DNA of 64,000 nucleotides from Anaeramoeba ignava BMAN (GCA_028826165.1 JAPDFW010000033.1:248001-312000), one strand, 5' to 3'; counted from the stretch's first letter, positions 24,658 to 56,350 are shown. Numbers and translations are program-made. The notes: generated by a model not told the origin, from the sequence alone.

Positions 24658-27600
24658 TTAATCAGAATCTGAATTTAAGTTTTGGTCACTATCACTGTCA
24701 TTATCATTATCATTATCATTATCATTATCGTTGTCATTATCGTTGTCAATGTCATTTTCGTTATCATTTTTATCTTCTGAATTATCTTCATTATCATTTT
24801 TATCTTCTTGATCTTCATTATCATTTTTATCTTCATCATCTTTTTCATCATTTTCATCTTTTTCATCATTTTTATCTTTTTCATCTTTTTCATCTTTTTC
24901 ATCTTCATTATCTTTTTCATCATTATCATCTTCATCATCTTGTTCATCTTGTTCATATTGTTCATCTTCAAGTTTTTGATAAGCGAAATTTGCAGATTTT
25001 TCTTTATCATCATCAACAACATAAGTTTCTTTATCATCAGGGTTTCCAGATTCCCAAAGAGGAGTTTTTTCAGAAGGCACATCAGAATCAGTTTTAGGGG
25101 GTTTAGGGGTATGTTTAGCAGGCCACCAATTCAATTTTCCAAAGAGAGCCATGATAGCAGGAACCATAAGAGTACGCACAACAAAAGTGTCGACAAGAAC
25201 ACAGAAACAGAACATGAAACCGAACTCAGTAAGAGTAGTGATTCGTGAGAAGAAAAGACCTGCGAAGGCAATAGCCATGATGATCCCAGCAGCAGTGATG
25301 ATCCCACCAGTCATGAATACACCATCAATAATGCACTCACGATCTGTCATCAAACCGGTTTTCTTGTTTTCATAAATTCGTGAGAAAAGAAAGATGTCGT
25401 AATCCATACCGAATCCAACAAGAACACTGAAACTGAGAACAGGAACAAGCCAGTACATGGAATGAACATCTTTGAGATAATGAACAAGCCAGCCGAAAGA
25501 ATCGTGCTGATAGACAATAACACCAAACCCGTAGATCCAGAGAAGACTGAAGCTGATTGTGAAGATAAGACGGACAGGGACAATGAGAGAACGGAATGCA
25601 GAGGAAGAAATAATGAAAACAATTGCTGCGGTAATGGATATAATGTAAGGGAAGAGCTGGTAAACGCGAGAAACAGCATCGATTTGATCTGTTGTCCCGC
25701 GGAAGAAATAATAGTTGTATTTCAGATTCTTGTTGGATACCAAGTTTCGGATCTTGTGAGTAAAGTCCTGCGTTCTGTATCCGAAGGGATCGAAATTGGG
25801 AATGATATCGAAGTATGCGCCTGTGCCGTTGTCGCAATACATCGAGAAGAGATAACGATATGCATTTCCAGTCTGAGTGAAATACAACGGAAAGGAAGGA
25901 TCAAACTCCATTCCGTAGGCCATTGTGTAATCAAGAGGTGATCCCTCGAGAAAACTGACGCCAATAATATCTGTGGCATCAATTCCTGTTATCGACACAA
26001 TATCATTCAGAACAGTTGCTGTCTCAGTGAAAAACTCTTGTGTGAAAATGTAACTGTTGTCCTTCGTTGTTGCAAGGAGTGAAAAAGGTGCGGCAATTCC
26101 TGGAGTGAAAACAGATGCCATTGTGTTGTATCTTTTCAATGATTCTGTATTTCGCGGGAAAATTTGCATATTGTCGATTGTCCATGTGAGTTTGGGAACT
26201 TGAATAATAAAAGGGATTGTGAGAGCAAAAATAATAATCAAGATGACAATCGCCCATTTTTTGTTTGTTGAGATTGTTGCAGAGCGTTTCCAGAAGGGTT
26301 GTTTGAGTTTAGGAGCCTCAGCATCTGGGTTTGTGCTTGGAATTGGAGGACGTGCACCGAGAAGAACAACATCAGGATTATTTGTATGGTGACCGGTTGT
26401 TGGGGTGTATTGTTGTTCATCAGGTGCGCGTTTATGTTTGCGGATATGCCCATTGACCATTGTATCAAGCTCCCAGATCTCGTCTTGGTCAAGATTCGCC
26501 TCGAGAAGTTGCTGTTGCCGCTCGATAGAACGCGCGTTTGGATTAACACCTGTTTGGCTCATTGTGTCGTTGAAAACGCTCATTGTGTCGTTGTACTGGC
26601 TCAGTGTGTCATTGTACTGACTCACTGTGTCGTTCATTTGACTTACTGTGTCATTCATCTGACTGAAATTATCGTTCATCTGGCTCATTGTGTCGTTCAT
26701 TGGAGTGAAATTTTCGTTCACACTCGTATTCTCTCCATCGATCTCCTTCCCAATAACTTCGGGCAATGCCGTGTATTTGGCTTTTTTTTCGTGAATTTTT
26801 TGGTATCTTCTCAGCTTCGCTTTGTCTTTTTTGCGCATGAGTTCAAAAGTGGAAAAAAATTTCTTGAACACGAAAAGTAGCGCAGGTGTCAGGGTCATGT
26901 TAACGATAATAACAGAAACAACAGAGAGCGAAGCAGCGACACCAAGGGAACGGATCATATCAAGAGGGAAAAACGCAAGGCCGATGAACGAGATGACGAG
27001 AATAAACCCACTGAGAGTGATAATGCGGCCCGAGTAGTGGCACATCTCGTAAATTGCGTAGAAATGGCGGTGGCCTGTAAGAAGACTTTCCTTAAAACGA
27101 GCGAGAAGAAACAGGGAGTAATCAATACTTGTTGCGATGATAAGGGACATCATGACGCTTGGGGTAAAAGTTGCGACGTTCCAGACATTTTTCGCAAGGG
27201 GTTCCATAATCATAAAACTAGTCGCAATAGAAACACCAACGGACAATAAGGGGAGAACAACGAACTTGAAACTTCTTAAGATAATACAAAGAACAATGAC
27301 AGCTAGAGGGATTGATATGCCATCCATAACCATCATGTCCTTGGCCGTCTGCGCGATGATATCCTGGAGAAGCACGGAGAAACCAACAAGACCGACCTTC
27401 ATTCCGCCGTTCCCGTTATCGTGAATATAGCTATTGACATGATCCTGGATGTGGTCGTTGAAATCGAATATGTTTGAGAAACTGGTGTCGATGCTCGTCA
27501 TCCTGAAGAACATATTTTTTCCATCGGGAGTTATAAATTCCTGCTGAAGATCGGTTAAGTTATCTTTCTCTTCTGAAAATGTCCAGTAGCCTTGAAAATC

Positions 27601-27930
27601 CGCCAAATACAATTTACCGCCATCAACAGTGTATTTCGTTGCGAAATCGGAAATCGAAAATTCAAGCCCTTTTGTCCAGTTTGTGATTGTTGTTTCGTCC
27701 GATTGAATGAATACTATTGTGTCTTGTCCATCATCAGGTGGAAATCTTTTGTTAAATTGCTTCTTTGCTTCATATCCTGGTGTTCCTTTTGGTGCTAATA
27801 ACGTTAAATTTGTTTCGCCGATTAGTTTGAATCCAATAAATACTCCTAATCCTGCTATTATTAACCATGCACCTAATATAAAATACCTTGTTTTTTTTAT
27901 AAATTTAGCATATTTTATTCCAAAATACAT
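24658..27930 (-). CDS. MMPL-family (RND superfamily) membrane transporter, intronless, with acidic C-terminal tail
   Basis: 1090 aa; two repeats of TM1 + soluble loop + 5 TMs; ATSIDYSLFLLARFKE and GFGMDYDIFLFSRIYE motifs; TGGIITAAGIIMAIAF; DTFVVRTLMVPAIMALFGKLNWWP C-terminal MMPL signature. Confidence 0.92.
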   Translation of the reverse strand: MYFGIKYAKFIKKTRYFILGAWLIIAGLGVFIGFKLIGETNLTLLAPKGTPGYEAKKQFNKRFPPDDGQDTIVFIQSDETTITNWTKGLEFSISDFATKYTVDGGKLYLADFQGYWTFSEEKDNLTDLQQEFITPDGKNMFFRMTSIDTSFSNIFDFNDHIQDHVNSYIHDNGNGGMKVGLVGFSVLLQDIIAQTAKDMMVMDGISIPLAVIVLCIILRSFKFVVLPLLSVGVSIATSFMIMEPLAKNVWNVATFTPSVMMSLIIATSIDYSLFLLARFKESLLTGHRHFYAIYEMCHYSGRIITLSGFILVISFIGLAFFPLDMIRSLGVAASLSVVSVIIVNMTLTPALLFVFKKFFSTFELMRKKDKAKLRRYQKIHEKKAKYTALPEVIGKEIDGENTSVNENFTPMNDTMSQMNDNFSQMNDTVSQMNDTVSQYNDTLSQYNDTMSVFNDTMSQTGVNPNARSIERQQQLLEANLDQDEIWELDTMVNGHIRKHKRAPDEQQYTPTTGHHTNNPDVVLLGARPPIPSTNPDAEAPKLKQPFWKRSATISTNKKWAIVILIIIFALTIPFIIQVPKLTWTIDNMQIFPRNTESLKRYNTMASVFTPGIAAPFSLLATTKDNSYIFTQEFFTETATVLNDIVSITGIDATDIIGVSFLEGSPLDYTMAYGMEFDPSFPLYFTQTGNAYRYLFSMYCDNGTGAYFDIIPNFDPFGYRTQDFTHKIRNLVSNKNLKYNYYFFRGTTDQIDAVSRVYQLFPYIISITAAIVFIISSSAFRSLIVPVRLIFTISFSLLWIYGFGVIVYQHDSFGWLVHYLKDVHSMYWLVPVLSFSVLVGFGMDYDIFLFSRIYENKKTGLMTDRECIIDGVFMTGGIITAAGIIMAIAFAGLFFSRITTLTEFGFMFCFCVLVDTFVVRTLMVPAIMALFGKLNWWPAKHTPKPPKTDSDVPSEKTPLWESGNPDDKETYVVDDDKEKSANFAYQKLEDEQYEQDEQDDEDDNDEKDNEDEKDEKDEKDKNDEKDENDEKDDEDKNDNEDQEDKNDNEDNSEDKNDNENDIDNDNDNDNDNDNDNDNDSDSDQNLNSDSD

Positions 27931-28340: not shown

Positions 28341-31300
28341 AATAGATTTGATTTAATATTTAATTTAAATTCTTTTTTAAAATGTATTTTATATTAAATA
28401 TTTATTATTAAAATTGATTAAAATAGATTTATTTATTTTTAAAAATTTGATTGAAAAATTGAATTAAAAATAATTAAATTTTTAATAGATTTGATTTAAT
28501 ATTTAATTTAAATTCTTTTTAAAATATATATTATATTAAATATTTATTATTAAAATTTATTAAAATAGATTTATTTCCTTTTTAAAAATAAATTAAAAAA
28601 TTGAATTAAAAATAATTAAATTTTTAATAGTTTTGATTTAATATTTAATTTAAATTCTTTTTAAAATGTATTTTATATTAAATATCTATTATTAATATTT
28701 ATTAAAATAGATTTATTTCTTTTTAAAAATAAATTAAAAATTGAATTAAAAATAATTAAATTTTTAATAGATTTAATTTAATATTTAATTTAAATTCTTT
28801 TTAAAATGTATATTATATTAAATATTTATTATTAAAATTGATTAAAATAGATTTATTTATTTTTAAAAATAAATTAAAAATTGAATTAAAAATAATTAAA
28901 TTTTTAATAGATTTGATTTAATATTTAATTTAAATTCTTTTTAAAATATATATTATATTAATTTTATTATTAAAATTGATTTAAATAGATTTATTTATTT
29001 TTAAAAATTAGATTAAAAATTGAATTAAAAATAATTAAATTTCTTAATAGATTTAATTTAATATTTAATTTAAATTCTTTTTAAAATGTATTTTATATTA
29101 AATATTTATTATTAAAATTGATTAAAATAGATTTATTTATTTTTAAAAATTTGATTAAAAATTGAATTAAAAATAATTAACTTTCTTAATAGTTTTGATT
29201 TAATATTTAATTTAAATTCTTTTTTAAAATGTATTTTATATTAAATTTATTATTAAAATTGATTAAAATAGATTTATTTCTTTTAAAAAATAAATTAAAA
29301 ATTGAATTAAAAATAATTAACTTTTTAATAGTTTTGATTTAATATTTAATTTAAATTCTTTTTAAAATGTATTTTATATTAAATATTTATTATTAATATT
29401 GATTAAAATATATTTATTTATTTTTAAAAATAGATTAAAAATTGAATTAAAAATAATTAAATTTTTTTAATAGATTTGATTTAATATTTAATTTATATTC
29501 TTTTTAAAATATATTTTATATTAAATATTTATTATTAAAATTTATTAAAATAGATTTATTTATTTTTAAAAATTGATTAAAAATTGAATTAAAAATAATT
29601 AAATTTTTAATAGATTTGATTTAATATTTAATTTAAATTCTTTTTAAAATATATATTATATTAAATATTTATTATTAATATTGATTAAAATTGATTTATT
29701 TCTTTTTAAAAATAAATTAAAAATTGAATTAAAAATAATTAACTTTTTAATAGTTTTGATTTAATATTTAATTTAAATTCTTTTTAAAATATATATTATA
29801 TTAAATATTTATTATTAAAATTTATTAAAATAGATTTATTTATTTTAAAAATTTGATTAAAAATTGAATTAAAAATAATTAAATTTCTTAATAGATTTGA
29901 TTTAATATCTAATTTAAATTCTTTTTAAAATATATATTATATTAATTTTATTATTAAAATTTATTAAAATAGATTTATTTCTTTTTAAAAATTTGATTAA
30001 AAATTGAATTAAAAATAATTAAATTTTTAATAGATTTGATTTAATATTTAATTTAAATTCTTTTTAAAATGTATTTTATATTAAATTTATTATTAATATT
30101 TATTAAAATAGATTTATTTCTTTTTAAAAATTAGATTAAAAATTAAATTAAAAATAATTAAATTTTTTAATAGTTTTGATTTAATATTTAATTTAAATTC
30201 TTTTTAAAATGTATTTTATATTAAATATTTATTATTAAAATTGATTAAAATTGATTTATTTCTTTTTAAAAATAAATTGAAAAATTAAATTAAATAATAA
30301 TTAAATTTCTTAATAGTTTTGATTTAATATTTAATTTAAATTCTTTTTAAAATGTATTTTATATTAAATATTTATTATTAATATTTATTAAAATTGATTT
30401 ATTTCTTTTTAAAAATAAATTAAAAATTGAATTAAAAATAATTAACTTTTTAATAGTTTTGATTTAATATTTAATTTAAATTCTTTTTAAAATATATATT
30501 ATATTAAATATCTATTATTAAAATTTATTAAAATAGATTTATTTATTTTTAAAAATTTGATTAAAAATTGAATTAAAAATAATTAAATTTCTTTTAATAG
30601 ATTTGATTTAGTATTTAATTTAAATTCTTTTTAAAATATATTTTATATTAAATATTTATTATTAATATTGATTAAAATAGATTTATTTATTTTTAAAAAT
30701 TAGATTAAAAATTGAATTAAAAATAATTAAATTTTTAATAGATTTGATTTAATATTTAATTTAAATTCTTTTTAAAATGTATATTATATTAAATATTTAT
30801 TATTAAAATTGATTAAAATAGATTAATTTCTTTTAAAAATTTGATTAAAAATTGAAATAAAAAATAATTAAATTTCTTAATAATTTTGATTTAGTATTTA
30901 ATTTAAATTCTTTTTAAAATATATTTTATATTAAATATTTATTATTAATATTTATTAAAATAGATTTATTTCATTTTAAAAATAAATTAAAAATTGAATT
31001 AAAAATAATTAAATTTTTAATAATTTTTGATTTAATATTTAATTTAAATTCTTTTTAAAATATATATTATATTAATTTTATTATTAAAATTTATTAAAAT
31101 AGATTTATTTCTTTTTAAAAATTAGATTAAAAATTGAATTAAAAATAATTAAATTTTTAATAGATTTGATTTAATATTTAATTTAAATTCTTTTTAAAAT
31201 GTATTTTATATTAAATATTTATTATTAAAATTTATTAAAATAGATTTATTCCTTTTTAAAAATTTGATTAAAAATTAAATTAAAAATAATTAAATTTTTA

Positions 31301-31780
31301 ATAGATTTGATTTAAATATTTAATTTAAATCCTTTTTAAAATATATATTATATTAAATATTTATTATTAAAATTTATTAAAATAGATTTATTTCTTTTAA
31401 AAAATAAATTGAAAAATTGAATTAAAAATAATTAAATTTTTAATAGATTTTGATTTAATATTTAATTTAAATTCTTTTTTAAAATATATTTATATTAAAT
31501 ATTTATTATTAATATTTATTAAAATAGATTTATTTATTTTTAAAAAATAAATTAAAAAATTGAATTAAAAAATAATTAAATTTCTTAATAGATTTGATTT
31601 AATATTTAATTTATATTCTTTTTTAAAATATATTTTATATTAAATATTTATTATTAAAATTTATTAAAATAGATTTATTTATTTTTAAAAATTTGATTAA
31701 AAAATTGAATTAAAAAATAATTAAATTTCTTAATAGTTTTGATTTAGTATTTATTATTAAAATTGATTAAAATAGATTTA
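28341..31780. repeat. Intergenic AT-rich satellite, ~140-bp unit, ~24 copies
   Basis: Anchor AATAG(A/T)TTTGATTTAATATTTAATTTAAATTC recurs at 28341, 28484, 28626, 28766, 28906 and onward. Confidence 0.92.
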
Positions 31781-31896: not shown

Positions 31897-34800
31897 ATGC
31901 TTTCAATCGAACAAATTTCAACAACACTTTTTGATAGCCAAAGATTTATTCCTTACATTTCACTTGATAAACAATTATATCAACCAGGAGAAAACATTTT
32001 CATTCGAGCAGTAGTTTTAAATTCTTTTACAAACGAACCATTAATTGATCCAAATGTATTAAATCAACTCAAAAATGCAAAAATCAAAATCAAAGATGCA
32101 AGAGATCAAACAGTTTTAGATGAAGATTTAAAATTGGATAATATCAAAGAAAGTAGTGTTTATTCATATTGTTGGAAAACAAATGATTCAACAAAAGGAG
32201 GAGAATATAAAGTGGTTATTTCTCATTTTATTTCTGATCAATTATTTTCATCTGAAAGAAAATTTGTTATTAGACCTTTTAGAATTCCAAGATTGAATAA
32301 GAACATTGAATTTCTTAAGCAAAGTTATTCAGCAAAAGATGAAGTTGAAGCTATTTTATCAGTTCAAAGAGTAGAAGGCGAAAATAATAAATTGGAGGAA
32401 ATTTCTGTTACTTATAAAGTCAAAAATGGATCTGATATTTTTAAATCTGGAACAAAAAATCTTGATTCAAAAGGAAAATTATTGATTAAATTTACTTTGC
32501 CTTCTAGAATCACTTCTGATGTTGTTTTGAATTGTATTATTAAGGATGGAGATGTTCAAGAAAATGCAGTTAAAAATGTTCCTGTTGTGAATTCAAAAAT
32601 TGATGTTAGTTTCTTTCCTGAAGGAGGAAATTTGGTTTATGGAATCAAATCAAGAGTTTATTTTGAAGCAACAAATGATATCAATGAACCAATTGATTTG
32701 GAAGCAGAATTAGTTTCTTCAAACAACGAAACAGTTAATCAAAATATCATTTTAAAGACCCAACATGAAGGAAGAGGATTTTTTGAATTTATTCCCCAAA
32801 ATGATAACAAATACTCTTTGAAAGTTATCAATCCAAAAAAAGATCCTGAATCAAAAATCGAATTACCTTATATCCTAAAAGAAGGAGTTTCAATGAAAGT
32901 TTTAAAACCCTCGTTTTCATTTGGAGAAGAAATTGAGATTGAAATGATTTCTTCTTATTCAGGAAATTTCAAAGTGGGATTATTTAAAAAGGAAATTGAG
33001 ATTGGACAAGAATTAGTATCAATTTCAGAGGATCAAAAATACAAACCAATTATTGTTAAAATTTCACCAAAAAATGAAAAATACCAACAAGGAATAATAA
33101 GAATAACAATTTACAAAATTGAACAACAAGAAAATCAAAAAATACTAATTATTCCAACAACAGAAAGATTAATATTTATTAAACAAAAAAGAGAGCTTAA
33201 TTTCAATATTAAACTTAATAAAGAATCTTACATTCCAGGCGAAAAAGTTGAAATGATTATTGAGACAAAAGATCAAAGCAATGAACCAATTAATTCAATT
33301 TGTGGAATAACAGTTACAGATAATTCAGTTTATGAAATGACTGAAAAAGCTGACCGAAATCCAAATTTGTTTTCTATGGTTCATTTAGAAAATGAAGTAT
33401 TAAAATTTCATGATTCTGAATCCTATCTTGATTTTAATGATGAAATTAGTCAAAGTATTTTTTATTATTTTATTATTTTTATATTTTTATTTAAAAATTA
33501 ATTTATTTTATTATTATTTTTATTAGAAAAACTTGATCTTTTACTTGGTATTCAAGGATGGAGAAATTTTGTTTTTTCAAGAACAATTCCAGATTATTTC
33601 AAAAATCAAGAGAAAATTATGAAAGCTTTTGTAATTCCTGAAAATATTATGAATTTCAAAATTAAATATGATCAAGAAACAATCTCTCTTTCTTGTGTTT
33701 CACAAACACCTTTAATCAAAATCAAAGAACTTATTGAAAAAGGATTTGATATTCCAATTTCATCCCAATATATTTTCAAACATAAGGAATATCTTTCAGG
33801 AAATGATAAATCGGTAAACGAATTTAAAATTGAACAAGATCAAGAACTCGAAGTTTTTGACTCAAGAAAATATGGAGAGAAAATATTCGTTAATGTTCTT
33901 GATATTGATTTGCTTTCGTTAGAATATGATCCAAATATCACAATTTCTTCTCTTAAAAAATATTTTGAAGAAAAGGAAGGAATGAAACAACAAAATCAAA
34001 CAATATTTTTCGAAAATGAAAAATTAGAAGATGATAAAGCATTAAATGATTATGGGATAAAACATGGAGATGTACTTAAAATGGATTTAAGTGAAATTAT
34101 GATTGAAATTTATGGTTCTAAATTTGAAACAATGAAAATTTTTATTGATCCCAAAGAAACTGTTGGAAAAGTGAAGCAAATTATTGAGGAAAAAGTAGGA
34201 TTCTTTCAAATTCAACAAAGATTCATTTTAGAACATGAAGATTTGGGAGATGATAAAACTCTTCAAGAAGTTAATATCAAGCATAAATCAAGAATATTGT
34301 TTATCCTTAACACAACAAAAAATTTAAAGATGAATGTGAAAATTCAATATTTTGAGAAAATTGTTGAATATGAGGTTTTTAATTATCAAAAAGTTGATGA
34401 TCTGAAAAAAAAGACTGTGGAAAGTTTCAAAATTCCTGAGAAAAAGCAACGCTTCTTTTTCCGTGAGAGAGAACTTGATAACTATTACGATTTCAAAACT
34501 GAAATGATTCCAAACAATTCACTTCTTCATTTAATTATGGATGAAGATTTTAATAAAAATTTGAAATTAACTATAAAAAACAAATCCAAAAATGAAGAAT
34601 ATCAAGTTAAAACAAAATTTGGAACAACACTTGAAGAATTAAAAGAAATTATTGAAAAAAAAGTGGGAATTAGAGAAAACAAACAAATGATTTTCTTCAA
34701 TGAAAAAATTCTTGATGATTTAGACAAAAAATTGATTTTCTATTTTATCAACAATGGAGATGCTATTCATGTTTTAGAAAATACAAATCAGAAGCCCTAT

Positions 34801-37800
34801 TTTGATATCAATATTCAACCAGTTTCAGGAAAAGTTTTTTCAGTAAATGTGAAAGAATCAGACAGAATTAGATATTTAAAAAAACAAATCCAAAAACAGT
34901 CAAAAATTCCTTTGGAAAAACAAATCCTTTTTTATCAAGGAAAATACTTGAATGATTTATCAACTTTGTCTTCTCTTTCAATTTCCAAGAAAGATTCAAA
35001 TGATGTTTTAATTAAAATGATTGATCCTAAAATTAAAGCTATTATTAATATTTGTATGCCTGACAAAGAAGAAACAATACACCAATTTAAATGCGAAATT
35101 GGAAAAACAATTTCTGACTTGAAAAAATTGATTGAAAAAAAAGAAATCGTTGAAGAAACCTTTGAGTTATATCAACCTTCAAACCGTTTTCTTCCAGAGA
35201 ATTCATTAATAGGTTCTTTAAGTTATCCATCAGAAAATTGGGAAACATTTGTGGATTTAGATTACTCATTCGGAGGTGAAATATTTATTAAAACATTAAC
35301 AGGAAAAGTTTTTACGATTGAAGTTAATCCAGATGATACAATTACAAAAGTGAAAGAAAAAATTCAAGATCAAGAAGGAATCTTAGCAAATCAACAAAGA
35401 TTAATATTTTCAGGGAAGCCATTAAATGATGATAAAACTTTGAGTGATTATCAGATCAAAAAGGGTTCAAGTCTTCATTTGGTTTGGCGACTAAAGGGAG
35501 GAGGCGGATATTTCAAAAAATCTGAAGATAAAACTGGACCAGAGGAATTAGCCTCATTAGAACAGCAAATCATGCAAGCTCGATTGAAATCAGCCAACAA
35601 TGATGAAAAACCTCTTGATGTTGTGGTTGAACCATTTGCAAGGGTTTATTCTCATAAATTGATCAAAATCGAGGAAGAAAGTCAAGATAAAGAAAGAAAA
35701 GATTTTACAAACACAATTTATTGGAATCCATCAATAAAAAGTGAAATGGATGAAACAATGGATAATGATAACCAAAATCAAATTGAAAATCAATTCAAGC
35801 ATAGTTCAGGCTTTAAAATTGAATTTGAAACTAATGATTCAATTACTTCATTCAGAGTTTTAATTGATGGATTTACTAATGATGGAGTGATTGGAAGCTC
35901 AAATTCTTTTGTTTTTGCTTCAAAAAAACCTTTTTATATTGAACCTAAATTACCACTTGAAATAACTTATAGTGATGAAATTAACTTTCCTGTTTATTTT
36001 GTGAATAATTTCCATGATACTTCATTGAAAATTGAAATGAATATTGAAGCAGAAAATTTGAAATTAAGTGAAAACAAAAAAGAAATTGAATTAAAACCAA
36101 ATGAAAGATTTGCAGAATTTATCAAGGCAACAATTTTAGAAAGCGAATCAAATTTAATTTCCAAAAACATTCCAATCAAAATTACAGCAAAATGCATTGA
36201 TAAACCATTTATTCAAGATTCAATTACAAAGGAATTTAAAGTTGTCCCAAATGGATTTCCAAATTATTTCAATTATTCAGGAATTCTTTCAAACAAAATC
36301 AAAAAAATTCAAAATCAATTTACGCTTTCTTCAATTATTCCAAAAAGTTTAACTTTCTCAATCCAATTTTATCCATCAATTCTTGCTAATTTTACAGAAT
36401 CAATCAAGAGTTTAATTCAAGAACCTCATGGATGTTTTGAACAAACATCAAGTGTTCTTTATCCCATGATAATGGCACAAAAATACTTTAAAAAAACAGG
36501 ATATGATGATTTAGAATTAGTTCAAAAAGCAAACGCTTTTATTCAAAAGGGATACAAGAAATTAATATCATATGAATGTAAAAATGGAGGATTTGAATGG
36601 TTTGGAGATGATCCAGCACATGAAGCATTAACATCAATGGGAGTTCTTGAATTTCTTGATTTATCAACAATATTTTCAGTTAATCAAGAAATGATGCAAA
36701 GAACAACAAGTTGGTTAATTTCTAGGAAAGATGAAGAATTGAAATCATTCAAAAAAAACAAAATAAAATTAGATTCATTTGGATATGCACCTCAACACAC
36801 AACAGATGCTTATATTGTTTGGTCTTTATCAGAAGGAAAAGTTGAAACTGAGAAAATTGGAGATATTATCCAAAGGCTTTACAAAGAAACTCATAAAGAA
36901 CATAAAAATGATCCATATTATATTGCACTAGTTTCAGCAACAATGTTCAATACAAATCAAAATGAAAAATCCTTGGAATTGAGTAAAAAATTAGTTAAAT
37001 TTCAAGATAAAAAAGAAGGATTTATTTCCGATTCAAAAACATCAATTACATCATCAAAAGGATCAAATTTAATCATTGAAACAACATCTTTAGCAATTCT
37101 TTGTTGGATAAAACATGGAAAAGAATTCAGTAAGAACATTTCCCAGGCAAGTGAATGGATTTTTTCAAAATGTTCATCAGGAAAATTTGGATCAACTCAA
37201 TCAACTGTTTTAGCATTAAAAGCTTTATCTGCTTTTGATGATTTTTCTGCTAAAGAACAAAAAGAACAGAGTTTGATTAATTTATCATTTGGAAAAACAC
37301 AAAAACAAATTGGAATAGGAGAAAAACAAGAAGATTCTGTTGAATTCAAATTTGGAAATGAAATTTTTGAGAATGAAAAGGAAATTGATTTTGGAATTGA
37401 AATGGAAAAAGGAAAAATGATGAGATTTTCAACAAGATTTGATTATTACACAGAAAAACCAAAAGATTCAACAAAATGTCCATTATCAATTTCCACAAAA
37501 TTAAAAGAAGAAAAGATGAAATTAGGAGAAACATCAGAAATTCATGTTTCTGTTGAGAATTTGGAAAATCAAGAATCAGGAATGGTTGTAGCCATTATTG
37601 GAATTCCAGGAGGAATTGAAACAAGATTTGAACAATTACAAAATCTTGTTAAGAAAGGAATTGTTTCTTCATTTGAATTGTTTGGAGCAAGACAAGTTGT
37701 TTTTTATTGGAGAGGAATGAATCCAAATCAAAAAATTGAATTTGATATTGAAGTACTTGCAACAATTCCAGGAAAATTCAAATCATCTCCTTCAAGAGTT

Positions 37801-37869
37801 TATTTGTATTATGGAGATGAAGAAGATAAGAAATGGATTGAACCTTCTTCTATTGAGATTTTCAATTAA
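31897..37869 (+). CDS. Alpha-2-macroglobulin/thioester-containing protein with a poly-ubiquitin-like bait region; exons 31897-33454 and 33527-37869 (~1966 aa)
   Basis: MG2 motif [33 protein letters not shown]; splice yields [15 protein letters not shown]; 8 UBL domains; [12 protein letters not shown]; NDSITSFR; [13 protein letters not shown]; thioester EPHGCFEQ (36430-36444); GGFEWFG; [12 protein letters not shown]; C-terminal [12 protein letters not shown]...SRVYLYY. Confidence 0.93.
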
Positions 37870-37934: not shown

Positions 37935-39380
37935 ATGGAAAATTATTCAAATTTAGAAAAACTTTCATTTAATTTAAAAAAATTATTTCAAAATCAAAAT
38001 CAAAATCAAAATCAAAATCAAAATCAAAATCAAAATCAAAATGAAAGTTATTTTGATTTTGAAATAATTTGTGAACAAAATCAAATTTCATTTAAAACTC
38101 ATAAATCAATTCTTTCTTCAAGGAGTCATTATTTTAAATCTCTTTTAAAATCAAAAATGAAAGAATATCAAGAAAATAAATTAATTTTAAAAGATGTTTC
38201 AAGTTCAATTCTATTTCCAATTTTGAATTATTTTTATTCAGGAAAAATTGAAATTAATTTAGAAAATGCAATTCAAATTTTAATTTTTTCATCAAAATAT
38301 TTAATTGATGAATTAATTGAAATTTCTTCAAATTTTATCAAAAATAATTTACAAATTGAAACTATTGTTGATGTTCTCAAATTATCTGAATCAATGAACT
38401 TTAATCAATTATTAGATTCTTCTTATCAATTTATTTCTAAAAATTTTGAAGAATTTATTAAAACTCCATTTTTTCTTGAACTTGAAGAAAATCATTTAAA
38501 TTCAATTTTATCAAATGATGGAATTTTAATAAATGAATTTGAAATTTTCCAATCAATAATAAAATGGGGAAAACATAAATTAAATATTAAACAAGAACTT
38601 GAAAAAGAAGAAAAAGAAAAATTACAAAATCAAATTTCAAATATTATTGATAAAATCAGATTTATTGATTTCACAAAAAAAGAACTTGCAGATATTTTAA
38701 AAGAAGAATTAATTCCAAAACAAATTTCAGAAAAATTAATTCAATTCCAAAAACTTGAAAAACAAAAAAATGAAAAAGAATTAAATGAATTTATTGAAAA
38801 CGAAAGTTCATTCATTTTCAAAACAAGATTTACATTTGATTCAGAAATTATTCAAGAAAAAGAGCATTTCAAAAAATTAAAAGAATGGACAAATGATAAT
38901 TATTTCTTTTCTAAAATGAAAAAAGGATTTTCAGCAAAAAAAGATGGATTTGATTGTAAAATTTGGCACAAAGCAGTTGATGATAAAGGAAAAACATTAA
39001 TTATTATCAAAACAAAAGATAATTTTATTTTTGGAGGATTTACTCAAATTGGTTTTAAATCAGGAACACCCGTAACTATTAATGATTCAAATGCATTTAT
39101 TTTTTCATTAAGAAATGATAAGAATGATAGAAAACCTGAGAAATTTCCATATAACAATGATGGTTATGCAATTTATTCTGATTTTTCAACTTATGGTCCA
39201 GTTTTTGGTTCAGGAAGTGATCTTGTAATAGAATCAGATTTAAAAAAAGGTTGGTTAAATTTTGGTAAGAGTTACAATCTACCTAAAGGAATTAAATATG
39301 GAACAAATGAAGCTAAAAGTTATTTAGGTGGTTCTTATAATAAATGGGTTGTTGATGAACTTGAAACTTATTTCATTTAA
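37935..39380 (+). CDS. BTB-BACK-TLDc protein (putative Cullin-3 adaptor), copy 1
   Basis: BTB: DFEIIC...FKTHKSILSSRSHYFKSLL...ILNYFYSGKI; BACK: EFEIFQSIIKWG...IRF; TLDc: KDGFDCKIWHKAVDDKGKTLIIIKT...IFGGFT...AFIFSL...YGPVFG...VDELETY. Confidence 0.92.
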   Translation: MENYSNLEKLSFNLKKLFQNQNQNQNQNQNQNQNQNESYFDFEIICEQNQISFKTHKSILSSRSHYFKSLLKSKMKEYQENKLILKDVSSSILFPILNYFYSGKIEINLENAIQILIFSSKYLIDELIEISSNFIKNNLQIETIVDVLKLSESMNFNQLLDSSYQFISKNFEEFIKTPFFLELEENHLNSILSNDGILINEFEIFQSIIKWGKHKLNIKQELEKEEKEKLQNQISNIIDKIRFIDFTKKELADILKEELIPKQISEKLIQFQKLEKQKNEKELNEFIENESSFIFKTRFTFDSEIIQEKEHFKKLKEWTNDNYFFSKMKKGFSAKKDGFDCKIWHKAVDDKGKTLIIIKTKDNFIFGGFTQIGFKSGTPVTINDSNAFIFSLRNDKNDRKPEKFPYNNDGYAIYSDFSTYGPVFGSGSDLVIESDLKKGWLNFGKSYNLPKGIKYGTNEAKSYLGGSYNKWVVDELETYFI

Positions 39381-39456
39381 AAAATATTTTTTTCAAAATT
39401 CAATTTTCAAAAATTTTAATTTCATTTTTTTTCTTTTCAATAAAAAAAAAAGCAAA

Positions 39457-40908
39457 ATGGAAAATTATTCAAATTTAGAAAAACTTTCATTTGATTTAAA
39501 AAATTTATTTCAAAATCAAAATCAAAATCAAAATGAAAGTTATTTTGATTTTGAAATAATTTGTGAACAAAAACAAAACTTCATTTAAAACTCATAAATC
39601 AATTCTTTCTTCAAGAAGTCATTATTTTAAATCTCTTTTAAAATCAAAAATGAAAGAATATCAAGAAAATAAATTAATTTTAAAAGATGTTTCAAGTTCA
39701 ATTCTATTTCCAATTTTGAATTATTTTTATTCAGGAAAAATTGAAATTAATTTAGAAAATGCAATTCAAATTTTAATTTTTTCATCAAAATATTTAATTG
39801 ATGAATTAATTGAAATTTCTTCAAAATTTATCAAAAATAATTTACAAATTGAAACTATTGTTGATGTTCTCAAATTATCTGAATCAATGAACTTTAATCA
39901 ATTATTAGATTCTTCTTATCAATTTATTTCTAAAAATTTTAAAGAATTTATCAAAACTCCATTTTTTCTTGAACTTGAAGAAAATCATTTAAATTCAATT
40001 TTATCAAATGATGGAATTTTAATAAATGAATTTGAAATTTTCCAATCAATAATAAAATGGGGAAAACATAAATTAAATATTAAACAAGAACTTGAAAAAG
40101 AAGAAAAAGAAAAATTACAAAATCAAATTTCAAATATTATTGATAAAATCAGATTTATTGATTTCACAAAAAAAGAACTTGCAGATACTTTGAAAGAAGA
40201 ATTAATTCCAAAACAAATTTCAGAAAAATTAATTCAATTCCAAAAACTTGAAAAACAAAAAAATGAAAAAGAATTAAATGAATTTATTGAAAACGAAAGT
40301 TCATTCATTTTCAAAACAAGATTTACATTTGATTCAGAAATTATTCAAGAAAAAGAGCATTTCAATAAATTAAAAGAATGGATAAATGATAATTATTTCT
40401 TTTCTAAAATGAAAAAAGGATTTTCAGCAAAAAAAGATGGATTTGATTGTAAAATTTGGCACAAAGCAGTTGATAATAAAGGAAAAACATTAATTATTAT
40501 CAAAACAAAAGATAATTTTATTTTTGGAAGTTTTACAAAAGTTGGATTTACGACTGATAGATCAAAATGGAATCATGAGGATAGAAAATTTGATTTTGGA
40601 TTTATTGTAGATTCAAATGCATTTATTTTTTCATTGAGAAATGATAAAAATGATAGAAACCTGAGAAATTTCCAATTAAGAAAGATCAAATAAAATATGC
40701 AATTTATTATGATTTACATGCTGGTCCAAGTTTTGGAATTTTTGGAGATATTCTTTTCAAATCTAAGTTACAACCTGGTGATTCAAATTTCGGTTCTAGT
40801 TACAATCTACCTAAAGGAATTAAATATGGAACAAATGAAGCTAAAAGTTATTTAGGTGGTTCTTATAATAAATGGGTTGTTGATGAACTTGAAACTTATT
40901 TCATTTAA
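39457..40908 (+). pseudogene. BTB-BACK-TLDc tandem copy 2 with two A-run frameshifts (pseudogene or consensus errors)
   Basis: Near-identical to copy 1; extra A at ~39570 and missing A at ~40658; same C-terminus YLGGSYNKWVVDELETYFI*. Confidence 0.75.
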
Positions 40909-47400: not shown

Positions 47401-49766
47401 CTTTTCTTTCTTTCAATTTACATTTGTTGATTGAAAATACATCATGCAAATTTGAAAAAATTCCTGAATCAACCCTTTGCTTAAAAGATGGATATTTGAT
47501 TGGGGTTTTATGTTCAATATCATCAAATAAAATATCATTGGAACTTTCCTCAAGATTGAAAATATTTTTGGATTGTGTTTCATCTTCTTCAAAAAGATTA
47601 TAGTTTTTTCTTGAAATTTCGGGTTTAATATCCGGATTATCAAAAATATTTATGTTTGCATTTTGAAAAATATTTTCACTTCTTTTTTCCAAATTAATTC
47701 TTGGATTTCTTGCTTGTTTTTCGTTTGAGGAAACTTCATTGATACTTTGGGTTTTCTTTTCTTTTCTTGTTAAAAGAATGTATTTTTTGCGGTCTTTTTC
47801 TTGGATCAAAAAATCTGGTTTTCCGATCCTTAAAACATATTTAATGATAGAATTTTCCCTTATTTTAGGGTATTGTGAGAAATTTTTTTGTTTTGTTTTC
47901 ATTGCGAAATTAAATAGAATTTCGTGTATTTTGTAAATTTCTGAAAGAGTAGAAAGTGCAGTTGTTATTCTATATTTCGGATCTATCATTTGTTTTCCTT
48001 TTTTCTTTAATAATAAATAATTAAATAATTAAATATATTTTTTATGCTCCAAATTTGCTTTTGTTTTTACAACTTCTTTCATTCTTGAAGAAAAAGTTGG
48101 ATTCGCTTGTGCAAAAATATCTAAAAAAGAATTGAGTTCATTTTCTCCAAATATTTTACTGGCATTATGCTTACGAAAACCTTTGCTTAACTAAATATTT
48201 CATTTTCAATATTTCATTTTGAAAATTGTTTTTGTTGTTGTTGTTTTTTAAATTACTTCTTGTAAATTTTTTCTTTGGAATTTGGAAATGGGAATATCGT
48301 CTATAATAGAAAATTTTTCTATATTTTTTTCAATAAATAAAAAATCATTAAATTTTTTTTTCACGTTTTCATTTGGAATTAAATGAATTTTGATAAATAA
48401 AAATCAAACTACAAAATAAATATAAAAATTAATCAATCAATTAATTAAAAAAATTTTTTTGAATGATAAGTTTGTTTTGTAAATGTTTTTTTTCAAACCC
48501 TGGAAATAAAATAAAAGGTTTTAAAAAAATATAGAATACAAAACTTCTAATAATTGAATGTGAACGAATTTTAAATTTTTGCGAAATTCTAATAAGAATT
48601 AAAAAATAGAATGAGTATTTTGATTATTTTAAAGAAAGAAAGGTATTTACTTAAGAATTCTTGAAGCTATCCATCGAATTCCTTGAGGAAGTAATTTTAA
48701 TTTCTCTTTCAATTCAACAATAAAAAATTTACAAAACCAAACAATTTTTTTTGTAACTAAAAATTTAAATATAAATATAAATATAAATATTTAAAATTTA
48801 AAATATAAATGTAAATATTACTCATATCATTTTGACTATTATCATCTTTAAGATTAACAAGTGTCTAAAAAAATTAAATTAGAAAATTTTTAATTAGAAA
48901 ATTTTTTTTCCGATTTTGAAAAAAAATTGTTTTTGATAATTTTTTCTTTTTACAAATTTTAAATTTGTTGTTTGAATAACATCAAGAATTGGTTCTTTTA
49001 AAGCAGAAATCAAATATTTATAAGAATGAGAATTTTGACAATACATAAGCAATAATTGAAATAAAAATTGATGAGTAGTTAAAATTTTATGGATTTTTTC
49101 TTCTTTGTAATTAACAAATCTAATTTTTAAGCATTCCTAAATAATAAAATAGATCAAATGAAGAAATTAAATAAGCAAAAAAAAGGAGAACGAAATTAAA
49201 TATTTTTTTTATATTGATATTTTTGTTTTTGTTTTTGTTTACATTAACAAAAATCAAAAATAATTTTTCTTCATATTCATTTGCAAAATGTGAAAAAATT
49301 GAAGGAATAGCTGAATAAACAAGTGTTTGAATATCTTGTTCAGATAAATTGGGAGTTTCCATTATGGCTATTGCTAAAATTTTGGGAGAATCTCTGATAA
49401 GTTTATAAAGTTTTTGATATTCATGCAATTGAATAAATGTTAAAGGTGATTGTAAAAATCCAAATTTTATCACTTTCCATGATTCAATATCTTCAACTTG
49501 ATTTACTATTGTTTCTGGTTTGATTTTGTGCATTAAAGATATTGAATTAAATCCTTCAACAAGAGTACTCATAAAGTTTTCAGATAAATTATTATATTTA
49601 TTTCTAATTTCTTTCATATCTTTTTCTTCTATTAATTTTTATTTTTTATTATTATTTTTATTATTTAATTTTTGTAAATTTTTTTTTTAAAACCTTTTTC
49701 TAAACAAATTTTTTGAGTTTTTAATTGTTGTTGAATTGAAGAAAGTGTTTGATTAATTTTTTCCAT
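44471..49766 (-). CDS. RasGAP-like + VPS9 domain protein (GAPVD1/Gapex-5-like Rab5 GEF), many exons
   Basis: C-terminal exons: PPLSKAKVFCK...DAGADLVLPII|IYLIIISNPPNFPSNMKFIELF...EYWFTISQSA (VPS9); EFFYPKFQ...KDSDF; N-terminal exons IPSIFSHFANEYEEKLFL and LLPQGIRWI are RasGAP-like; internal exon boundaries not all resolved. Confidence 0.75.
45130..46490. repeat. Intronic degenerate ~11-bp (GAATTAAATTT/GAATTAATTTT) minisatellite
   Basis: Visible within a ~1.4-kb intron of the VPS9 gene. Confidence 0.85.
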
Positions 49767-49934
49767 TAAAAGAAAATTAAAAAATAATTTTTTATTTTTA
49801 TTAAAAAAATAACAAAAAAAAATGAAAAATAAAAAATAAAAATAAAAAATTCATTTTTTTTTTCAGTTTAATTTTTCTTTATTTTTCCTTTTTTTTTTGC
49901 TATTTTTTTTTATTATTATTTTATTACTATTTTT

Positions 49935-52900
49935 ATGCAAACCAAATTTTTATCTCAAATTAGTAAAAAAAAAATAAATATAAACCAAAAAAAAAAACAA
50001 CGGAAAATTAAGTCAACAAAATTCTCAAATCTTTTTTTTTTCTTTTTTTTTTCTTTTAGAAAAGCATCTCTCAACAAATGGAGAGCAAACTTTCTTTTCT
50101 GATGTTGTAACCAAAACTTTTGAAAAGGGGAATCAAGAAGCTTCTTGTTTATTACTTCTTACTTTATATAAGGTTTATTTAATTCCAAGTAAGAAGAAAG
50201 GAGTAAAAAAGAAAATTATAAATACTTTTGGGCATCACTTATTCAGTTTGAAGAGCATTTATTCTCTACATCATCTTCATGTAAATTTACATTTTAATTT
50301 TAATTTTAATTTTAATTTTAATTTTAATTTTAATTTTAATTTTAATTTTAATTTTAATTCTTATTTTATTTTAATTTTAATTTAAATTTAATTTACATTT
50401 TAATATTAATTCTAATTTTAATTTTAATTTTAATTTTAATTCTTAATATTAATTTTAATTTTAATTTTAATATTAATTTTAATTTTAATTTTAATTTTAA
50501 TTTTAATTTTAATTTTAATTTTAATTGAAATTTAATTTTAATTTTAATTTTAATTTTAATTTTAATTTTAATTTTAATTCTAATTTTAATTTTAATTTTA
50601 ATTTTAATTTTAATTCTAATTTTAATTCTAATTTTAATTTTAATTTTTAATTTTAAATTTTCTTGAAATTATTATATTTCGCCAAAATGTTGAAATTATT
50701 AATAAACAATTTTCAGGAATTCCAAAAATTTTAATTTTAATTTTAATTTTAGAAAATTTTAAATTTTAATTTTAATTCAAAAAATTTTTTAATTTTAATA
50801 TTTAATTTTAATTTAATTTTAATTTTAATTTAATTCAAAAATATATAAATTTTTTAAGGTTTAATTCTTTAAAAATTTTTAATTTAAAAATATTTAAATG
50901 AAATTGAAATCGCCAAAAATGTGATGAAATTATTCAAAAATTCATAAACAATGGTTGAAAATTGCAAAAATCAGGAATTCCAAAAAATCGATGGTTAAAT
51001 ATTTATATTGCACCTGAAAAAAGAAGAAAGAGATTTGAGCCTCTTATTAAAGAAGCAGAAGATACAGAATTTGGTAGAAAATCAAAAAAATATTTAAATT
51101 TAATTTAAAAAATATTTATATTTAATTCAAAAAATATTTAAATTTAATCCAAAAAATATTTATTAATTTAATTCAAAAATATTTAAATTTAATTTCAAAA
51201 ATATTTAAATTTAAATCAAAAATATTTATATATTTTTAAAAAAAAAAATATTTAATTCAAAAAATTTAATTCAAAAATATTTTTATTTTAATTTTAAAAA
51301 TATTTAAATTTAATCAAAAAAATATTTAATCTAAATTCAAAAATATATAAATTTAATTTAAAAATATTTAAATTTAATTCAAAAATATTTAAATTTAATT
51401 CAAAAATATTTAATCTAAATTTAAAAAATCCAAAAATTTATATTTAATTTAAAAAATTTAATTCAAAAAATATTTAAATTTATATTTAATCCAAAAATAT
51501 TTAAATTTAATTCAAAAATATTTAAATTTAAATTTAAAAAATATTTAAATTAAATCCAAAAATATTTAAATTTAATTCAAAAATATTTAAATTTAATTCA
51601 AAAATATTTAATTCAAAATATTTAAATTTAATTCAAAAAATATTAAATTTAATTTAAAAAATATTTAAATTTAATTCAAAAAATATTTAAATTTAATTCA
51701 AAAAATATTTAAATTTAATTCAAAAAATATTTAAATTTAATTCAAAAAATATTTAATTTAAATTCAAAAATATTTAAATTTAATTCAAAAAATATTTAAT
51801 TTAATCCAAAAAATATTTAAATTTAATTCAAAAAATATTTAAATTTAAATCAAAAAATATTTAAATTTAATTCAAAAATATTTAAATTTAATCCAAAAAA
51901 TATTTAATTTAATTCAAAAAATATTTAAATTTAATTCAAAAAATATTAAGACAATATAAACTCCGAACAAGGATTTCTTGAAAGCTACTACGCACATTGC
52001 AACAGAATGGAAATCAAATCAAATACACAAATTGTTGAATACTCAAGATACATATTCCGAAAGGCACAAAAAACAAACAAATTAAATTTAACAAAAATGT
52101 TATGGAATAACTCATCCGAAGACGAGCGCAACCAATTAGACGCAGGACCACTCTTCGGAATAGTAGAGCGTAATATAACCTTTCAGGAAATAAACGTATC
52201 AAAATTTCCAGGAAAAGGAACACTGGGATATCTTGCTGATGTATTGAAAAAAAACAAAGAAATTCGGAAGATAATAGCGCAAAGTGTGAAGGATGATGAA
52301 GGAATGCAACGTTTATGGAAGGCAATATCTCACCACAACTGCGCAAATTTGCAAAGTTTGGATCTCTCGAAAGTAAACTTGAACGACAAGAACACAACAC
52401 AGCTCATTGTGGAAGCACTTAGCCAAAAGAACATCGGAATCTGCAAATTGAAATTGAACAAATGCGGATTTAACACAAAATCACTGACTTGGATTTTCAC
52501 GGAGATGAAAAAGGCAGAAAAGTTCAATAAGATCATCAAGCGAATTGAGATCAACGGAAATAAGCTAGCGAGAACAGGATCAAAGGCATTTATTGAATGG
52601 CTAGAGTGCGTGACAAGCAAGACGTTTTCTCGACTTTCGATTTCAGAAACAGAAGCAGAAATTAACGGAATTTTATCCGTTTTGCTTTCCAAATTCACCG
52701 AAAGTTTAACTCATCTCGATATCTCCAAAAACAATATTCCGCAAAATTCCGCGCAAATAAAAGACAATGAAGAAAAAGAAGATCTTCTTGTTTTATTGGT
52801 TCGCCGAGCAAAATTGCTAAGAAATTTGGATATTTCAAAAACAAATTTGCAGCTCGATGTTTTTGAAGAGGTGGCTACTGCGCTTGGGAACGAGAGTGAG

Positions 52901-55900: not shown

Positions 55901-56350
55901 AAAACCAAAACCAAAAACAAAAGCAAACTCATTGATTCCATTGATGATTTACCAAAGCTTCCTTTCAGTGAAATATTGATCAATCCCAAATTCTGCTTTT
56001 GGTTCCAAAATTATCTTAAACAAGAATTTGCTGATGAAAACCTTTCTTTCTTCTTTGCTGTTCATCAATGGAAAGCTATTAATCCAAATAACGATGCTTT
56101 GATTTCTTTAAGTGCTAAAAAAATATATGATGAGTTCATTTCTCCAAAAGCTGAATTTCAAGTCAATATTGATGGAATAACTCGCACAAAAATTAAAAAG
56201 AAGATTCAAGATTGTGATTTTTCTCCTGTTCTTTTTGATGATGCTTTGGAAGCTGTTTTACATCTTATGAGAACAGCTATTTATCCTGGTTTTGTTAGAA
56301 GTCCTTTATATATTCATTTATGGGAAGATGATTCCACTTCAAAGAAATGA
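49935..56350 (+). CDS. CARMIL-like PH + LRR protein fused to ankyrin repeats, a Ras-like GTPase domain, coiled coil and RGS domain
   Basis: Probable ATG 49935; exon 50060-50280 is PH-like (LLLLTLYKVYLI...HHLFSLKSIYS); terminal exon from 51951 (GFLESYYAHC); RI-type LRRs (LNIQGNQMGDIGA, LKWDDNRIT); ankyrins (GWTAFHRAA, GSTALHKSA, QTPLDLA); GNAKCGKT/DVSG/TSAK; RGS FQNYLKQEFADENLSFF...IYDEFI...QVNID...FDDA...LM...YPGFVRS. Confidence 0.85.
51090..51945. repeat. Intronic ~22-bp (AAAAATATTTAAATTTAATTCA) minisatellite
   Basis: Visible tandem units between the GT at ~51075 and the AAG at 51948-51950. Confidence 0.85.

Follow-up and report, generated by a model that had tools for sequence, protein, structure and literature searches.

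To our knowledge, the characterised alpha-2-macroglobulin (A2M) and complement thioester proteins are all made for export. In the A2M superfamily (A2MF) the trigger is proteolytic: the stretch that follows the bait runs through a channel, from which cleavage lets it retract, with exposure of the thioester (PMC9352918). Bait-swapped forms of Escherichia coli A2M, made in BirA-expressing E. coli, covalently capture chosen proteases through lysines (PMC9918453), and suggest by analogy that an A2M thioester can form in a cytoplasm. The gene described here lies at positions 31897-37869 on the plus strand of a 64,000-nucleotide stretch of the Anaeramoeba ignava BMAN genome (GCA_028826165.1, JAPDFW010000033.1:248001-312000; hereafter the window), and its product, KAJ5079290.1 (1966 residues), is by architecture an A2MF member that carries an array of ubiquitin-like (UBL) units at the position of the bait. 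The source genome is AT-rich and 42.8 Mb long, and the window is its contig 24, hence the name C24 for this copy. We give a probability of roughly 45% to the reading that C24 is a cytosolic thioester protein in which a deubiquitinase (DUB) would cut after a di-Gly and the opened thioester would capture the DUB; the architecture, its conservation and its expression are solid, and the function is what we infer.

With human A2M, A2ML1 and CD109, C24 shares the domain order from MG2 to MG8, a linker (LNK) and bait within MG6, the R-x-x-F of alpha'NT, the Cys-Gln thioester motif and its Met and Tyr-Tyr shield; unlike them, it has neither signal peptide nor MG1, GCFEQ in place of GCGEQ, Asp for Asn at position 1088, and a 618-residue array of folded UBLs against a 39-residue flexible bait. 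Secretion (judged by a hydrophobicity scan), a short unstructured bait and a full MG1-MG6 ring, all marks of canonical A2M inhibitors, are absent from C24, whose protein begins ~17 residues before MG2, MG1 being missing clade-wide. Complement C3 and C4, especially C4A, resemble it in having a folded domain in the trigger slot with a specific site (predicted in C24) at its C-terminal end, and the thioester domain (TED) fits C3d/C4d at ~2.7 Å; the Asp at the catalytic position is one that C24 presumably has in common with C4A. C24 differs from C3 and C4 in its UBLs in place of the anaphylatoxin (ANA) domain, in lacking C345C (no Pfam match, the protein ending with MG8) and a furin site, in having Asp1602 for the catalytic His and in its apparently intracellular location, and because there is no furin site the bait would stay attached after a cut. 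The closest sequences belong to the bacterial 'GCFEQ' A2M clade (annotated YfaS-like; 33-37% identity) and to signal-less protist members (Protostelium and other Anaeramoeba paralogues), which have the same motifs and likewise lack MG1; the bacterial members, unlike C24, are of low complexity in their baits and carry either a signal peptide or a membrane anchor. In E. coli A2M (ECAM/YfhM) and A2Mcap, covalent protease capture takes place with the bait setting specificity, whereas in C24 capture is only predicted; ECAM/YfhM is a sequence-distant periplasmic lipoprotein, and the engineered baits of A2Mcap are short peptides and not ubiquitin folds (PMC9918453). Polyubiquitin and ubiquitin-fusion precursors are also built of head-to-tail beta-grasp units, the last of which, as in C24 with its RLKGG, is followed by an in-frame extension, but the units of C24 are non-identical, GG is missing from seven of them, and the array sits inside an unrelated polypeptide. 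The CAGE complex, a 15-domain hollow tetramer, resembles A2M domains at fold level only, and thioester and ubiquitin are not mentioned for it (10.1101/2025.09.22.677704).

KAJ5079290.1, named only 'a-macroglobulin complement' in the database, was returned by the exon-2 search; the exons were searched one by one and the deposited record was compared with them. It equals exon 1 (31897-33454) and exon 2 (33527-37869) as translated, with one junction residue between them. Exon 1 starts with MG2, with neither signal peptide nor MG1, and reaches, past MG5 and the N-terminal half of MG6, into LNK (Pfam MG2 at residues 20-108, a weak A2M_BRD match at 429-481); exon 2 holds the remainder of LNK, the UBL array, alpha'NT/MG6b, MG7, CUB, TED, CUB and MG8. 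Two open reading frames (ORFs) are present in the window, 31897-33501 and 33619-37869, and the original prediction had joined them into one protein across a 72-bp intron. That they form one polypeptide is borne out by A. flamelloides KAJ3426080.1, which has an equivalent design within a single 5535-nt exon and a 99%-identical counterpart in a second assembly, and by transcript evidence from a paralogue. The intron (33455-33526, 72 nt, 2.8% GC) is GT-AG and phase 1, its frames fit, and its position is common to the paralogues C59, C70 and C74. Expression was assessed in a run that has no library record and whose contigs behave like RNA (a probable RNA run), searched with 33453-33532 masked as repeat. 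One 504-nt contig places 384 nt on 33069-33452 and the remainder on exon 2 to ~33645, lengths that add up only without the intron, which is therefore skipped in that contig; its alleles are those of C70, so that splicing is shown for C70, and for the window copy we infer it. A second contig spans 34635-35718 with 6 differences in 1084 to C24 against 166 and 208 mismatches to paralogues, and C24 or a near-identical allele is therefore transcribed, from UBL5 through the di-Gly into MG6b. Two separate genes are ruled out by the single-exon orthologue, the conserved intron, the deposited model and the intron-less contig. A signal-peptide exon hidden upstream is unlikely, given that a stop codon in the same frame lies 6 nt before the ATG, that satellite DNA lies beyond it and that orthologue N-termini are hydrophilic too.

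Above the cut-off, Pfam recognises MG2 in the first exon, and in the second it recognises ubiquitin (245 bits), A2M, TED_complement and A2M_recep. A profile built from 68 non-UBL relatives matched human A2M at E 3e-71, in a continuous alignment over A2M 725-1457 that keeps the equivalents of Met1378 and Tyr1452/1453. Aligned to 6tav_A, the profile places the family's R-x-D-F-T on RKYFPETW directly after the A2M bait, GCFEQ on GCGEQ and the Asp of LDSFG on Asn1088. In C24, all on the plus strand, the LNK motif DLLLGxQGWRxF (33535-33567) is invariant or near-invariant in the family alignment, and the stretch at 35695-35730, opening with RKDF at 35695, corresponds to RKYFPETWIW of A2M, with R732 and F735 of alpha'NT, and begins the second half of MG6 (PMC9352918). 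The TED occupies 36385-37233 (PF07678, 93.6 bits), and in a model of the orthologue it superposes on C3d/C4d at 2.6-2.9 Å root-mean-square deviation over ~220 residues. The thioester motif GCFEQ (C1489-Q1492; 36430-36444) is intact, as had been claimed, and so are the shielding residues Met1872 and Tyr1947/Tyr1948 (A2M M1378, Y1452 and Y1453) in the MG8/receptor-binding domain (PF07677; 37573-37824). LDSFG lies at 36769-36783, its Asp1602 being counted from the alignment to 6tav_A at the position of A2M Asn1088, which we take to be equivalent to the catalytic His of C3 and C4B and to the Asp of C4A; Asp1602 thus predicts amine (lysine) reactivity of the C4A/A2M kind.

Residues 380-1575 of the single-exon orthologue from A. 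flamelloides were modelled with AlphaFold; the model is confident either side of the insert and aligns in order, its residue 7 to A2M 452 (MG5), 100 to A2M 564 (MG6a) and 698 to C3b ~760 (alpha' start), followed by the TED, with a structure Z of ~22 to A2M. Most UBLs in it are of low confidence and whole-chain TM-scores are ~0.17, because MG1-4 and MG8 are absent from the model, which was used only for domain order and ranges; single-sequence AlphaFold of the UBL array gave a confidence score (pLDDT) of 30.7. The profile and orthologue-model alignments together therefore place the UBLs between LNK and alpha'NT, in the slot that holds the bait in A2M and the anaphylatoxin domain in C3, which agrees with the original prediction of an array at the bait position within a split MG6. 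The MG3/MG4 region of C24 is not directly matched (the profile matched MG2, the model MG5-MG6), and the length from MG2 to the end of MG6a is about as expected, 464 residues against ~475.

The array was delimited with an iterated UBL hidden Markov model, and identities are given to A. ignava's own ubiquitin. As predicted, eight units fill 33649-35502: seven are strong matches (iE 1e-20 to 1e-32; units 1 to 6 at 33649-33873, 33877-34101, 34096-34320, 34330-34548, 34567-34791 and 34801-35025), and unit 7 (~35040-35260) is degenerate, with a partial match of 2.8e-4, although it is full-length in C74. Only unit 8 (35275-35502), 64% identical to ubiquitin and ending in WRLKGG, is clearly ubiquitin-like and has the di-Gly, after which, at residue 1178, cleavage is predicted. 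Units 1-7 are 17-34% identical to ubiquitin, have no GG joints and do not keep the L8/I44/H68/V70 hydrophobic patch, and the earlier idea of a mimic of a polyubiquitin chain is ruled out on these grounds; the array appears to be a single ubiquitin-like substrate, with degenerate UBLs serving as its spacer. The layout, unit 8 with a conserved LxGG and then an in-frame extension, is that predicted for a DUB-cleavable ubiquitin fusion. Between the di-Gly and the R-x-x-F motif lies a variable segment of 64 residues (35503-35694; residual bait and alpha'NT), predicted from the mechanism of PMC9352918 to thread the MG2-MG3-LNK channel. Natural baits within the family measure 116-250+ residues. In the A. 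flamelloides version there are about five UBL units, with LRLRGG on the third (76% ubiquitin), LKLKGG on the fourth and RSG-V at the end of the last.

The genome of A. ignava holds 12 A2M-type genes, four of which (C24, C59, C70 and C74) have the UBL array, and in all four GG is confined to the last unit, so that the proposed RLKGG site is upheld as a conserved LxGG tail at which cleavage is predicted. Across the four copies, whose last units are 34-63% identical, only 12 of the 76 positions of unit 8 never vary, and L73, G75 and G76 are among them; the tails read WRLKGG, LRLRGG (C70, 84% ubiquitin), LLLRGG and IRLIGG, R72 is kept in three of the four, and the last units of C59 and C74 are only 43% ubiquitin. 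Among C24, C59 and C70 the scaffold is 87-98% identical, against 46-63% for unit 8 and 45-52% for the linker after the GG, and the TED is under purifying selection (dN 0.012-0.035 and dS 0.03-0.11 among close copies). C74 is 48% identical and keeps eight UBLs and the di-Gly, with the thioester Cys lost (motif EGFEQ). In the assembly, C59 (at the start of UBL1) and C70 (near the 3' end) each show a one-base frameshift, which may be an assembly error in a homopolymer run. Paralogues with other baits, the search for which had been proposed, were found: seven have ordinary low-complexity baits, and C116 has in the bait slot a multi-exon Snf7/CHMP4-like sequence (~49300-50100, minus strand; PF03357 over cut-off at C116:49712-49861), so that the slot has taken up folded host proteins more than once. 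An unrelated scaffold on C13 carries several degenerate UBLs followed by a near-authentic ubiquitin ending LRLRGG, an insert design like the A2M bait; its relatives are bacterial without ubiquitin and fungal with ubiquitin, and its residues after the GG resemble those of C70. At least 127 UBL matches occur in the genome, and variant polyubiquitin-like genes (C65, C74 and C147) consist of units that match the C70 unit 8 query at ~75% identity and are linked via GG and an extra Asn.

The N-terminus of C24 has no hydrophobic stretch, the best 12-residue Kyte-Doolittle mean being 0.94, whereas 78 of 83 full-length non-protist homologues reach at least 1.8; the predicted lack of a signal peptide is thereby supported, and the A. 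flamelloides orthologue is likewise hydrophilic at its N-terminus. The seven A. ignava paralogues with ordinary low-complexity baits (C131, C60, C1, C126, two on C43, and C65) start with Met-Gly and are apparently membrane-anchored cytosolic A2Ms. The myristoylation motif MGxxx[ST] is found in six of these seven (six out of eight when all A. ignava paralogues without UBLs are counted) and in four from A. flamelloides, which also have ordinary baits, and the genome has two N-myristoyltransferase genes; motifs and genes together are positive evidence for a family that probably faces the cytosol, C24 itself having no such motif.

In the DUB-trap reading, the protein would fold with the Cys1489-Gln1492 thioester buried and the linker threaded through the MG2-MG3-LNK channel, the folded UBL array playing the part of a stopper, a part that in C3 falls to the folded anaphylatoxin domain. 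With a folded stopper upstream, only cleavage beyond the final folded unit could be productive. Unit 8 would then be bound by a DUB or UBL protease, which would cut after Gly-Gly, the sole ubiquitin-type site and one that lies C-terminal to the last folded unit; the freed linker would retract, MG7-CUB-TED-MG8 would rearrange, and the exposed thioester, with Asp at its catalytic position, would attack a lysine, the nearest being that of the DUB, still held by the cleaved unit 8 on the N-terminal half. The outcome would be a single-turnover covalent trap or tag, and each copy would be sprung by its own set of proteases, tuned by the speed at which unit 8 diverges among the paralogues. It is the single conserved di-Gly after the last unit in all four A. 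ignava genes, taken with the plug-in-channel model, that suggests activation by a DUB, and since the cut unit stays on the N-terminal half and Asp predicts lysine reactivity, the DUB would be the likeliest captive. Support comes from the bait-slot position, from the retained equivalents of R732/F735, M1378 and Y1452/Y1453, and from the invariance of LxGG against a divergent unit 8, and further from the lack of a signal peptide, the grouping of the UBL-bait copies of two species and the precedent of bait-swapped E. coli A2M.

Several points weigh against a DUB trap. In A. flamelloides it is the third and fourth units that carry the GG and the last one has RSG-V at its end, so that a folded unit would stay on the retracting side. 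Abundant host DUBs would be expected to cleave a near-authentic ubiquitin with a flexible tail all the time, behaviour more in keeping with maturation or activation than with a waiting trap, and the 64-residue linker could be cut by any protease. C74 retains eight UBLs and the GG, yet its thioester Cys is lost. Native folding of human A2M suffers when its bait is made 10-20 residues longer (PMC9352918). In bacterial homologues two cysteines occur together as a disulfide pair would (31 have both, 18 neither, 7 one), and these are kept in C24. Positive selection on unit 8 is not shown (dN/dS 0.47-0.78, with dS raised along with dN), so that there is no formal sign of an arms race, and bait replacement or homogenisation of the scaffold would account equally well for the divergence pattern.

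Of the alternatives, the one that survives best, although doubtful, has the protein work as complement does: a host DUB, acting constitutively or on a signal, would be the convertase, the activated thioester would tag nearby proteins or membranes (e.g., a damaged phagosome or symbiosome, or an intruder) and not mainly the DUB, and the UBL array on the N-terminal half would recruit ubiquitin-binding machinery. C3 and C4 likewise lose a folded domain by one specific C-terminal cut, the C70 unit with its LRLRGG is an expected host-DUB substrate, the same insert design on the unrelated C13 scaffold suggests a general DUB-cleavable switch, and the myristoylation motifs of family members would target membranes; but C24 is without a C345C domain, catalytic His or RRRR site, an Asp-type thioester should react with the closest lysine, the DUB being the closest protein, and a housekeeping activation site would not be expected to diverge from ubiquitin as rapidly as unit 8 has in three of the four copies.

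It is unlikely that the UBLs serve as an address label, docking on ubiquitin or UBL receptors (the proteasome, p97 cofactors, UBA proteins), with the trigger being either ordinary proteases acting on the variable linker or an AAA unfoldase that pulls the stopper (p97 or the proteasome; Vps4 for the Snf7 paralogue). Such a role would fit the seven of eight units without GG and the A. flamelloides last unit that has none, the Snf7 bait of C116, which is an unfoldase substrate and not a DUB substrate (the A. flamelloides layout and the Snf7 bait being also among the main doubts over a DUB trap), and a post-GG linker that varies like an ordinary bait; it fits poorly with a receptor-binding L8/I44/H68/V70 patch that is not conserved in units 1-7 and not invariant even in unit 8, when the LxGG tail is invariant.

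The absence of any working trigger is very improbable. A large insertion would here block the native thioester fold and leave non-covalent scaffolds or decaying fusions in a UBL-rich genome, and the folding defect of bait-extended human A2M (PMC9352918), the missing thioester Cys of C74, the assembly frameshifts in C59 and C70 and the abundance of UBL matches can be read in this way; the fusion is, however, kept in two distant species and transcribed, its TED is under purifying selection, the motif and shielding residues are intact, and natural baits of the family are themselves long. Least probable of all is a giant ubiquitin-like modifier, whose processed N-terminal half would end in a free Gly-Gly, be conjugated by E1-E2-E3 and so cross-link proteins through two covalent handles: processing would expose a canonical C-terminus, with R72 in three of four copies, a near-authentic ubiquitin in C70 and a GG retained in the thioester-less C74, but the C59 and C74 units are probably too divergent for a ubiquitin E1, and no dedicated E1, E2 or E3 gene was seen adjoining the A2M gene.

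Relatives of the family are common in Planctomycetota, Myxococcota, Lentisphaerota and Melainabacteria, and amoebozoan members occur in Protostelium, Flabellula and Pelomyxa. Members from Protostelium nocturnum have no signal peptide, so that signal-less A2Ms are wider than Anaeramoeba; the Pelomyxa member has an N-terminal membrane anchor, and in many bacterial members an N-terminal anti-sigma-like zinc finger (PF13490 in two) and a transmembrane segment are fused to A2M, suggesting thioester proteins that may be coupled to transmembrane signalling. In an unrooted IQ-TREE phylogeny of the C-terminal half (C59, C60 and C43b omitted as near-duplicates; supports are UFBoot/SH), the bacterial sequences are set apart by a branch with 100/99, Anaeramoeba together with an unplaced sequence receives 99/98, and the UBL-bait genes of both Anaeramoeba species group at 99/95, the simplest reading of which is a single origin of the UBL bait, probably before the species split. 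Recent transfer from a named bacterial donor is not shown by this tree, as the protist sequences fall to one side of the 100/99 branch and the tree is unrooted, and a viral origin is disfavoured, with no relative in IMG/VR.

Among the matches listed from outside Anaeramoeba (~480 proteins retrieved), none combines UBL and TED in one protein; the ESM Atlas returned ordinary A2M clusters only, and NCBIfam nothing useful. Targeted literature searches, with subscription journals largely outside their coverage, found no published description of a UBL-baited A2M, and no experimental work on the bacterial GCFEQ A2M clade was found. Macroglobulin is not mentioned in the Anaeramoeba symbiosome paper, and the present analysis found no pointer to a pathogen or viral enzyme as target.

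In the rest of the window, a 140-bp AT-rich satellite (28341-31779; 24 copies, 92% match) ends 118 nt before the A2M start codon, and tandem BTB-BACK-TLDc genes (37935-40693) follow directly downstream. A USP-family deubiquitinase gene (PF00443; 12110-17326) lies ~15 kb upstream of the A2M gene, with no evidence of a link between the two. The window also contains a Tc5/pogo DDE transposase (5037-6743), a bacterial-type MMPL transporter gene of 40% GC (24658-27930) and a multidomain LRR-ankyrin-Ras-RGS ORF (52007-56350).

In the plant NLR integrated decoys, copies of host proteins sit in the variable slot of a sensor. The Anaeramoeba A2Ms likewise hold copies of host proteins (ubiquitin and Snf7), on an unrelated scaffold, with an output predicted to be covalent and a sensing of effectors that is here only hypothetical. 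A wider reading that we hold tentatively, as clearly less probable than not, is that these proteins are intracellular complement-like thioester sensors with host-protein copies in the slot (UBL in four genes, ESCRT-III Snf7 in one, ordinary baits in the myristoylated ones). They would covalently capture or tag the enzymes that attack those host systems, effectors of intracellular bacteria among them, and so provide an 'integrated decoy' immunity on an A2M scaffold in a unicellular eukaryote.

If the trap reading is true, C24 would be the first natural genetically encoded covalent DUB trap known to us, a natural counterpart of the ubiquitin activity-based probes and a possible scaffold for DUB-selective capture reagents. 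It would also offer a direct test of the plug-in-channel trigger: with a folded stopper, cleavage should be effective nowhere but after the last unit. The finding would bear on the idea, raised in PMC5241319, of complement-type proteins beginning as intracellular sensors. Anaeramoeba houses bacterial symbionts (10.1101/2023.03.03.530753), and in a relative lives a symbiont of the Legionellales that has a Dot/Icm system (10.64898/2026.04.11.717937); a covalent DUB trap, if true, would provide a handle on cell-autonomous immunity in a symbiont-bearing protist.

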